A stretch of DNA of 64,000 nt, from NCBI RefSeq assembly GCF_033153115.1, contig NW_026889760.1, positions 682,001 to 746,000 on the forward strand, read 5' to 3'. This document shows positions 21,901 to 24,900 of the stretch, in pieces. The stretch's first letter is position 1; each line of letters opens with the position of its first letter. The notes below the pieces were generated by a model that worked only from the letters and a program-made list of their open reading frames with translations, made no database searches and was not told where the DNA came from. The DNA comes from Saccostrea echinata (lineage: Eukaryota). Both the position numbers and the translations under genes were made by a program.

Positions 21901-24900
21901 GTGAGCGAGCACGGAGTCGAGATGGGGGACCAGTACATTGAGGCAGTACGTGACTGGCCTGTTTCTTGCTACGTGAAGGGCGTTGAGCGTTTCCTAGGCT
22001 TCGCCAGCTATCACCGTAGTTTCATTCCCCAGTTCTCGAGAATATCGGCTCCGCTGTACGCGGTTACCGGAAAGAGTGGTTTCCGATGGGGGGCTGAACA
22101 ACAAAGTGCCTTCGGGGAACTCATCCAGTTAATGACCAAACCCCCAATACCTGCTATTTCGAACAGTACAGGTCACTTCATTCTGGATACTGACGCCTCG
22201 TATCATGCCGTAGGCGGGGAACTTAACCAAGTCCAGAATGGAAGTGAACCATTGGGCATGGCAGCGCAGTGCTGTCATCAGAACAGCGTAAGTAATGCAC
22301 TACTAGAAAGGAATAGTCAAGTTTACTAGACAATTCCTCCATTACCTGCTGGGCAGGGAGTTCACAGTCCTGACAAACCACCATAGCCTGGTCTGACTGA
22401 TGAACTTTAAGCATCCGCAGAATCAGATTGCTCGCTGGTTAGAAGAGCTGACCCAGTACAATATGCGGATAGTCCATCGCCCAGGCAAGAAGCATGTGAA
22501 TGCCGATGCGCTGTCCAGAGACATACCAGACACTTGCCAGAATTACTCGACTAAAATCAGAGTAGAAGATTTGCCATGTGGCGGATGCAGGTATTGCCGC
22601 CGAGCACATGAGCGCTGGCATGACTTTAATACCGAAATTGACGATGTAATTCCACCAGCTCTTTGAGGAATCGCCTTTGACAGCGGAGACTCAGTCAGCT
22701 GAGGGGGGTAATTATGAGATGTTAGATCCCACTCTCGGTCAGGCTATTGTGACAAGTACTTGGGAAGATGTTCCGTTGACAGCAGGTACCCCTGAACTTC
22801 CGAGTTTTGAAATGGCTGTCAATGGGGTGTCGAGTTTAAGTCCCGAGATTGAGGAAGTGAAACCTTAAGTTTATCAGCTAACTCAAGGTGACACTGTGGG
22901 AATTTCCCTATCCTTATACAGCCCCGCAGATATGGCTCATAAACAGAAATCAGATGAGGCCATGGTTTACCCGAGACAGTACTTAGAGTCTGGGAGTTTA
23001 CCTACCGAAAGTGACATGATAATCTGTAGTCCGGAAGAGAAATGTTATCTTCTGGAAAGAGACTGTTTTACAGTGGACGAGACAGGTGTTATTTGGCGAG
23101 AACCGGAAGACTCGGATATGCCTCGTAGATTGTTAGTTCCGAAGAGTCTTAGGTCTGAGGTCATGCACTTATGTCATGACATTCCGTCGTCCGGTCACCA
23201 GGGTATACAAAGAACTAAAGAGAGACTTAAACAATAGCTCTATTGGTGGCGGATGGTCAAGGACATTAAGTTATATGTCAGGACATGCGACATTTGTGTC
23301 CGGAATAAGAGGGGTTGTTTGCCGAATAAATCGGAAATGAAAAGCTTCCAGGTCGGAAGTCCGATGGAGAGAGTGCACTTAGACTTTCTTGGGCCGCTAC
23401 CCCGAACAAAAAACCGAAATGAGTATATACTCATGATGGTAGATAACTTTACCCAGTGGGTTGAGTGCATTCCGCTCCCATCTCAAACAGCGGAGGTTAC
23501 GGCTAAGTCAGCCATAAACGATTTCTTTTCGCGATTTGGCTACCCTTATGAAATTTTTACAGATCAAGGCCGTAATTTTGAAAGTGAGCTTTTCTGTAAA
23601 ATCTGTGCAATGTTAGGTATTCATAACGCCATACAGACCTTCCGGGAATGGCCAAGTAGAACGGTAACCGCACCGTAATGGATGCGGTCTGCTGCTACAT
23701 TGATGGTCAGCCCAAGACATGGGATAGGTTTTTGGGTCCACTGGCTGGGGCATTGCGGTCGGCGGTGAATCGCCACACCGGATATACGCCAAATCGTCTA
23801 ATGCTGGGTAGGGAAGTTAACATACCAGCAACCTTGATGTTTTCCCCACCCCTTTCGGAATCTTTTCAAAATGGGGAGGAGGGTGAGGTTGACAGGTATG
23901 TACGTGATCTGGAACAGAACGTGCAGAGCGCGCATGACATTGCCCGCAAGAAATTGAAGGTCGCGCAAAAGGCAATGAAAAAAGGTCGCACGACGTTAAG
24001 ATCCGTACCCACAAGTTCAAGGTCGGAGATTTGGTGTATTGGCGCCGCAATGCGGGAAAGAAAGTCGAGTCTATCTGGAAGGATCCAGGTATCATAACCG
24101 AAGCCAAATCCGACACAATATTTGTCGTCAAATCTCGGCGCGATGTCAAGGTCATGCACCATGACAAGCTTAAGAAGTGTGAGGCCAGGCAACTTCCCAA
24201 GTGGTTAGTTACTGATCAGAGCAAGTTGCCCGGACAGTCAGTAGGCCGAGGTGGGAATAGTTCCCTTGTGCGCGACGTGGTTAGACCGATGGGAACTGCG
24301 GACTCAGGGTCAAGTCCTGGGGACCCGGGCAGTGGAGGTAAGTCTAAAGTCAGCCCTAAACCAGCGAAAACAGTAGGTCCATATCTGGATACCCGGAAAC
24401 GGGTAAGGGAAAGGTCAGAACAACCAGAAAAACCCAAATCGCCCAAACGACGTAGAGCCACTAAGGGGGCTAAGACCCGACAGTATTGTTTATGCTTACA
24501 ATCCAACCCTAAAGGTTTGATGGTCCAGTGCGACAGTTGCCGGGACTGGTTTCATCACAGGTGTGTGGGTATAAGTGAGGATTATGCTAAATCAGTACCT
24601 CAATATACTTGCCCCGAATTGCAGTCCCATCAGTGTTAGCAATCCCTAGGTTAGGATCCCGCAAGGGTGCGGAAGCATGTGTAGCTGTTTGCTAGCGTGA
24701 TTGTATATATGTTTGTTCTTACTGCTAGGAAAGCAGATCTTTTTAATTATAAAGGGATATTGCCCTGATCTGATGATAGATCCATTTATCATGATGTTCC
24801 TGAGATTTATGTAGCCCGATGTTCCAGGGACGATGAATTGGAGCCAGTTCCAGGATAGGTCGTTCGCGACGGAGTCGCGGACGTGATATCACGCTAGATA

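Follow-up and report, generated by a model that had tools for sequence, protein, structure and literature searches.

We report that the integrase of a family of Ty3/Gypsy retrotransposons with long terminal repeats (LTRs) from the oyster Saccostrea echinata ends in a PHD finger that has the residues of a methyl-lysine reader. The family is represented by a copy in a 64,000-nucleotide stretch of genomic DNA (NCBI RefSeq assembly GCF_033153115.1, contig NW_026889760.1, positions 682,001 to 746,000 of the forward strand; the whole stretch is referred to as the window, and positions are given in its coordinates). The copy at 17658-25563 is a Ty3/Gypsy element that is old and inactive; its broken finger is found intact in other copies, in other families of the same genome and in related elements from molluscs and a sea urchin. 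Specifically, the in-frame fusion of the finger to the C-terminus of the integrase, its conservation, the purifying selection acting on it and its reader residues are established by the data below.

In the window, the open frame at 24031-24639 on the forward strand comprises 202 codons and encodes an SH3-like module of the GPY/F type (24031-24207, in the translation a W-K-D-P-G variant), a basic low-complexity linker with a K/R stretch resembling a nuclear localisation signal (NLS; 24208-24480) and the PHD finger, which extends from Tyr152 through the first seven zinc ligands, C1 to C7 (24484-24615). The first-pass annotation, made from the letters alone, had called a PHD finger here, and the stretch it quoted corresponds to the last 52 residues of the 24031-24639 translation, with Q151 starting at 24481 and P195 ending at 24615. 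Pfam confirms the call: residues 153-196 align with positions 1-46 of the 47 in the PF00628 profile (E-value 1.1e-9) and score 38.6 bits, compared to a gathering score of 24 bits. The linker, put at about 90 residues in that annotation, counts 86 residues and is rich in S, P, G, K and R. Upstream of the module an integrase is present as described, with an H2C2 zinc domain and an rve core (23136-23624, Pfam Integrase_H2C2 and rve) that are split by a frame change near 23235-23253. The GPY/F-type module is kept in all relatives, and intact copies give a weak match to the C-terminal domain of murine leukaemia virus (MLV) integrase (Pfam MLVIN_C). Both the window copy and the intact copies have the finger where chromoviruses have their chromodomain, on the integrase C-terminus, as had been proposed.

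The finger of the window copy has seven of the eight zinc ligands in frame, and the complete C4HC3 pattern is not present in one frame. In a DNA alignment with three other copies, the window copy has one additional base within 24617-24620, between the seventh and the eighth ligand; the frame consequently slips after the seventh ligand and runs to a stop at 24637-24639, which leaves a broken end with the eighth ligand out of frame (24616-24639). It had been suggested that removal of one base restores this ligand, and natural copies indeed read C-P-E-C in frame, with the stop 8-9 codons further on, so that the complete C4HC3 pattern exists in nature. The three residues that were taken as the signature of a methyl-lysine reader are in place in the window (Tyr before C1, Met three residues before the third Cys and Trp two residues after the fourth) and are also kept in relatives.

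A six-frame search of the whole genome (923 Mb) with the 202-residue tail gave at least 158 matches. Approximately 15 copies with 84-89% identity have integrase, linker and PHD in one frame, and several PHD copies lie inside open frames of 1,300-2,350 residues, some of them flanked by LTRs that are 99-100% identical. Two full-length elements have open frames of 2,145 and 2,356 residues, LTRs with 99.3% and 100% identity and the target-site duplications TAAA and GTAC. According to Pfam, four natural polyproteins from distinct families share the order CCHC-PR-RT-RNaseH-IN-PHD (zinc knuckle, protease, reverse transcriptase, RNase H, integrase and finger), with the PHD last, and the PF00628 scores of intact copies range between 40.1 and 42.9 bits. 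At least four families in the genome have the finger, and the in-frame integrase-PHD fusion expected from the broken window copy is found in other copies. Judged by their almost identical LTRs and long open frames, several of the oyster PHD families look recently active.

The linker varies between families. Next to the 86 basic residues in the window's family, a second family has 73 residues including an AT-hook-like R-K-R-G-R-P-R-K and a third has 15 residues, and among the database relatives the length ranges from 0 to 238 residues. In the second family (L032:8622-9077; L034, L047-L055) the AT-hook-like motif stands directly before the finger, and in three of its loci (L048, L049 and L051) the frame continues for more than 150 residues beyond the PHD. 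Moreover, G000:C48:2702481/2711659 and G000:C32:7315425/7324588 each combine a tail of the first family (88-89% identical to that in the window) with a more distant one (55-57%) in the same orientation; the two are spaced by 9,178 and 9,163 bases, respectively, and may represent a duplicated composite arrangement.

The integrase-to-PHD part of one natural pol was used as query for database relatives, which gave 1,376 proteins at E <= 1e-5, and the best 120 of these were analysed. Precomputed Pfam lists have both rve and PF00628 in 118 of the best 120, and the full C4HC3 pattern is present in 114. All 114 have Met three residues before the third Cys as well as Trp after the fourth; directly in front of the first Cys, 96 have Tyr and 15 have Phe (Tyr or Phe in 111 of 114). 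The finger ends 20 residues or less from the C-terminus in 110 of the 114. The species named as sources of the relatives are Pinctada imbricata (a bivalve), Haliotis rufescens and Nucella lapillus (both gastropods) and Lytechinus pictus (a sea urchin). The relatives also include some bins assigned to bacterial symbionts of lucinid clams, probably as a result of host contamination.

The integrase alone, without linker and finger, was compared with 1.84 billion representatives using HMMER, which gave 9,547 proteins at E <= 1e-30. A PHD is present in only approximately 15-18 of the best 150 integrase representatives, the count varying with the strictness of the PHD definition. In a maximum-likelihood tree of 134 integrase regions, from which the tails were excluded, the PHD rows are almost all confined to one clade (29 rows, 22 with PHD; Shimodaira-Hasegawa-like approximate likelihood ratio test, SH-aLRT, 100) that takes in all three families included from this genome (the window's is one of them) and the Pinctada, Haliotis, Nucella and Lytechinus proteins. 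In seven rows of the clade no PHD was recognised. The tail is truncated in three of these, the sequence stops within the finger in one, and the tail is of another kind in three, where the PHD could have been lost or the gene model could be wrong. A pair of PHD-bearing representatives branches outside this clade but next to it, at a fork that the tree does not resolve, so that a single origin of the PHD in these elements is compatible with the tree but not proven by it.

The tails of the nearest integrase relatives without PHD (P0217-P0363) are mostly acidic, with a median of 21% Asp plus Glu. The acidic tails end in a basic motif that is short and conserved, approximately T-R-x-G-R-x-x-(R/K)-x-P-x-x-(L/F/Y)-x-D-Y; of 77 PHD-less tails, 21 have its strict form and 50 a looser one of the basic-Pro-aromatic type. 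By eye, this C-terminal motif resembles arginine-anchor or adaptor-binding peptides.

When those subfamilies of the window's family that have diverged further are compared, the ratio of nonsynonymous to synonymous substitution rates (dN/dS) in the 46 codons of the PHD is 0.02-0.17, values that are rough since the samples are short; near-identical copies of the other families were uninformative. The finger is thus under purifying selection, with a dN/dS below 1, the test proposed in the first-pass annotation, and the direction agrees with the conservation among the database relatives. The clearest pair, L031 and L003, has a dN of 0.018 and a dS of 0.80 in the PHD, compared to a dS of 0.09 in the linker. 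Given these two dS values, the 3' ends of the subfamilies have different histories. This suggests mosaic 3' ends that arose by recombination between lineages, with the protein sequence of the PHD nonetheless kept. In the same pair the difference concerns approximately the last 120 codons of pol, and the 3' untranslated sequence differs too. Taken together, the relatives with both rve and PHD, the low dN/dS and the supported clade make the finger a trait of a lineage and not a one-off capture.

With respect to its ligand, the natural intact finger was compared with sequences in PDB, where the best matches are EBS (5e-13), PHF8 (1e-12), CFP1/CXXC1 (4e-12), PHF2 (4e-12) and BPTF (5e-12), followed by SHL, KDM7, DIDO1 and Spp1 with E-values up to 2e-8. 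The top matches are all established readers of histone H3 trimethylated at lysine 4 (H3K4me3), and no Pygopus chain is present among the 64 PDB matches. The alignments place the Tyr, Met and Trp of the oyster family on the cage positions of these readers; the second Tyr of PHF8 and BPTF corresponds to a one-residue gap in the family finger, and CFP1 aligns without gaps. In ING2 the cage has Trp as wall, Met as back wall and Tyr as floor (PMC9898751), and Met is usual at the position of Y23 in BPTF and is required for binding in TAF3 and DIDO1 (PMC8246079). By its sequence, the finger belongs to the H3K4me3-reader class.

We also predicted a complex in which the natural finger and two zinc ions were combined with the unmodified tail (residues 1-40) of the H3 that this genome encodes. 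The score was 0.35, compared to 0.00 for the best of three controls, which is weak support, as most passes at or below 0.60 are wrong unless the partners were likely to pair in the first place; the runs had at least 93% contact agreement and a partner pLDDT (predicted local distance difference test) of at least 53. In the calibration of the tool its mark was reached by 51 of 78 solved complexes and by 2 of 108 mismatched pairs. As regards the finger itself, the AlphaFold2 model of the tail from a single sequence has a pLDDT of 41, and a second model, for which 14 rows of natural PHDs were aligned, has one of 64.6. Foldseek found no match of the model in PDB at E <= 0.001, and VIA-align gave no Z above 3.2. 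Models this poor are uninformative, a small zinc-dependent fold having been modelled without zinc, and do not constitute evidence against a PHD.

The conservation of the PHD across the mollusc and sea-urchin clade is our reason for thinking that it probably steers integration. We propose that in active family members the finger would tether the intasome, via the flexible linker, to nucleosomes marked with H3K4me2/3, and that this tethering would bias integration towards transcriptionally permissive chromatin, a mirror of the chromodomain that biases chromoviruses towards H3K9-methylated chromatin. That such tethering can redirect an integrase is known from HIV-1, where an ING2 PHD fused to the integrase-binding domain (IBD) of LEDGF shifts integration towards transcription start sites (PMC8149907). 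We regard binding of the finger to methylated H3K4 as probable, somewhat more so than the full model, in which H3K4me2/3 tethering is combined with an integration bias towards active chromatin and which we place just on the probable side.

Several observations weigh against the model. The cage has three members and, like that of CFP1, is without the second Tyr of PHF8 and BPTF, so affinity or the preferred methyl state may differ; the predicted PHD-H3 complex is a weak pass that may echo memory of solved PHD-H3 complexes; and the structure models are too poor to be used for the geometry of the cage. Moreover, the three insertion sites examined are in DNA of approximately 30% GC and have no evident promoter features. 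Surviving germline copies are a filtered sample, which need not mirror the initial preference. CpG content is a poor proxy for insertion-site bias here, since the intergenic DNA of this genome is also likely to be unmethylated. Finally, targeting of promoters should be costly to the host. One survey names such a cost as a possible reason for the rarity of transposon fusions with acetyl-lysine readers.

An alternative, which we consider unlikely, is that the PHD binds the H3 tail, in one or another methylation state, only to retain the pre-integration complex or the integrase on chromosomes or in the nucleus, with no useful selectivity for sites, and that other factors determine where integration takes place. 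The NLS-like basic stretches of the linker would fit such a role, as would the AT-hook-like R-K-R-G-R-P-R-K of the second family, which would add non-specific DNA binding; likewise, sister lineages without PHD have a short basic C-terminal motif in its place that could serve generally for chromatin binding or import, and the examined insertion sites are AT-rich and without a promoter signature. The invariant Met and Trp together with Tyr/Phe, however, are specific to methyl-lysine recognition and needless for a general tether, and since H3K4me3 is sharply localised, binding to it implies a positional bias.

Less likely still is that the finger acts after integration or apart from it, by recruiting or imitating the host transcription machinery at the element's promoter or by binding a methylated non-histone host protein that resembles the N-terminus of H3. 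Fingers of this class do bind non-histone H3 mimics, e.g. in the PHF2-VRK1 pair, and earlier authors have proposed chromatin remodelling as the role of transposon PHDs; yet here the finger is covalently attached to the C-terminus of the integrase, the site of known targeting modules such as the chromodomain and the MLV tail, and a transcription function would be more natural in gag or in a separate open frame. A functionless captured host exon or a chance in-frame read-through, to which the break within the finger of the window copy might point, is very improbable, and one-off capture and host exon read-through are ruled out by the many in-frame copies in at least four families, the presence of the fusion in 118 of the best 120 relatives, which represent two phyla, the dN/dS far below 1 and the one supported clade.

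The copy in the window has the hallmarks of a Ty3/Gypsy element, i.e. two LTRs, a target-site duplication, a site resembling a primer-binding site and a polypurine tract, and Pfam and tblastn place its domains in the Ty3/Gypsy order of protease, reverse transcriptase, RNase H and integrase. All its parts are on the forward strand. The 5' LTR (17658-17942, 285 bp) and the 3' LTR (25252-25563, 312 bp) align with 86.5% identity and with indels, and the identical four bases TTAT lie outside both (17654-17657 on the 5' side and 25564-25567 on the 3' side); the target-site duplication is 4 bp in the two young copies as well. The 3' LTR contains an internal duplication of 26 bp (GCAGGGTACAGACGTGT...), which the 5' LTR lacks. 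The primer-binding-site-like stretch TTGGCGCGGCG... (17943-17962) adjoins the 5' LTR, with TGGCGC... at the equivalent place in young copies, and the polypurine tract AAAATGGGGAGGAG (25238-25251), which is identical in a young copy, adjoins the 3' LTR. The gag region (18149-20138) is in several broken frames (3, 2, 3 and 1 by tblastn with residues 1-625 of the polyprotein of an intact copy), and is followed by a CCHC zinc knuckle and an aspartic protease (20246-20743; Pfam zf-CCHC and gag-asp_proteas/RVP in the open frame 20210-20935), a reverse transcriptase (21435-21880; RVT_1, E 7e-14) with frame changes by tblastn, and an RNase H (22087-22269; RT_RNaseH_2, E 1e-9). Compared to an intact relative by tblastn, the polyprotein of the window copy is in at least 13 frame segments; the nucleotide identity is approximately 91%. 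The diverged LTRs and the fragmented pol show that the copy is old and dead, and the break in the PHD is one among many lesions.

Elsewhere in the window, two overlapping open frames at 57963-59923 on the forward strand have leucine-rich repeats and a TIR domain (TIR E 4e-21), and together they look like a gene of the Toll-like-receptor type. For an open frame of 1,014 residues at 33360-36404 on the forward strand, Pfam listed nothing at E <= 0.001 and the protein atlas gave no usable match. Four tandem or interspersed direct repeats of approximately 146-175 bp with 60-82% identity lie at 14062-14885, just upstream of an assembly gap at 15136-15301.

PHDs in transposons are already known; what appears to be new here is the mollusc and echinoderm clade in which the PHD is C-terminal on the integrase. 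PHDs have been published in CR1-like elements, in several elements of Chlamydomonas, REM1 and Gypsy-7a_cRei among them, in Penelope-like elements and in Ginger1. Of the distinct targeting system suggested in the first-pass annotation, the part that is supported is a conserved and selected C-terminal PHD with a reader signature. The novelty was overstated, since PHDs in LTR and other retrotransposons have been published, and fusions of PHDs with transposons have been surveyed across eukaryotes. Large surveys of LTR elements in molluscs, annelids and bivalves use a classification based on reverse transcriptase (RT) and make no mention of PHD or chromodomain. We found no paper on the clade or on its integrase-C-terminal finger of the PHF8/CFP1/BPTF type, nor one testing H3K4me3-guided integration by a natural retrotransposon, although Repbase Reports or subscription journals may contain a description of the former or an account of the latter.

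The choice of integration sites by retroelements is central to genome evolution and to the design of vectors. To our knowledge, chromodomain elements, which seek heterochromatin, are the only ones for which it is established that the integrase reads a histone mark directly. If the model is true, the PHD clade is the mirror case of these elements and seeks active chromatin. Going further, we tentatively suggest a broader picture, at present more doubtful than the model itself, in which the integrase C-terminus would be an exchangeable slot for chromatin tethers throughout a large set of marine-invertebrate Gypsy elements. The H3K4me3-PHD clade, including the oyster families that look recently active, would then be the first natural case of an animal retrotransposon guided to active-promoter chromatin by direct reading of a mark, and its sister lineages would use the short and conserved basic peptide (approximately T-R-x-G-R-x-x-R/K-x-P) at the end of the acidic tail, perhaps for binding to the nucleosome surface or a host adaptor. 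Close lineages with PHD, with basic peptide or with neither are present in the same genomes and provide a natural comparison, and since several oyster families look recently active, the targeting model could be tested by insertion polymorphism and H3K4me3 maps alone, without engineering.

Among known systems, the RAG2 PHD of the transposon-derived V(D)J recombinase differs in its location, a separate subunit of a domesticated DNA-transposon recombinase instead of the integrase of a retrotransposon. Mobile elements with an accessory PHD are also known among CR1-like non-LTR retrotransposons and Ginger1 DNA transposons, and in Ginger1-9_HM the PHD is also C-terminal, on a transposase that resembles Gypsy integrase; these are, however, other element classes with other mechanisms, and the Ginger PHD is accompanied by a Ulp1 protease domain. 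The Chlamydomonas elements Gypsy-7a_cRei and REM1 are LTR retrotransposons with a PHD in their polyproteins, and it has been suggested that this has to do with chromatin or the choice of targets. In Gypsy-7a_cRei, the insertion of which is non-random and mostly intergenic, the PHD is between RNase H and integrase and not C-terminal, and a green alga is the host; no evidence links the acquisition in Chlamydomonas to that in the mollusc and echinoderm elements.

Grau-Bove et al. (bioRxiv 10.1101/2021.11.30.470311) surveyed 172 eukaryotic genomes; the passages considered here describe RT and integrase domains as frequent companions of PHD and chromodomain readers, and highlight PYGO-like PHDs in cnidarian retrotransposons that are said to recognise H3K4me. 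To judge from these passages, the cnidarian fusions share with the oyster family the co-occurrence of PHD with RT and integrase and differ from it in the type of finger, that of the oyster family matching the PHF8/CFP1/BPTF/EBS group and giving no Pygopus match; cnidarians are named there, and no mollusc or echinoderm clade with a PHD at the integrase C-terminus is described in them.

The engineered fusion of the LEDGF IBD with the ING2 PHD has the same principle as that proposed for the oyster elements, i.e. a PHD that tethers a retroviral integrase to H3K4me3 and moves integration towards transcription start sites (PMC8149907). It is artificial and acts on HIV-1 via a host cofactor, whereas the oyster fusion is natural and covalent. 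Chromodomains direct chromoviruses to heterochromatin, and in chromoviruses such as MAGGY and Tf1, as in the oyster elements, a methyl-lysine reader follows the GPY/F module at the C-terminus of a Gypsy integrase as the proposed tether of the intasome. No chromodomain family is present among the Pfam matches of the window pieces or of the four intact polyproteins, which have the PHD instead. The reader is thus a chromodomain in the chromoviruses and a zinc-binding PHD in the oyster elements, and the mark is H3K9me of heterochromatin in the former and, as predicted here, H3K4me3 of active chromatin in the latter.

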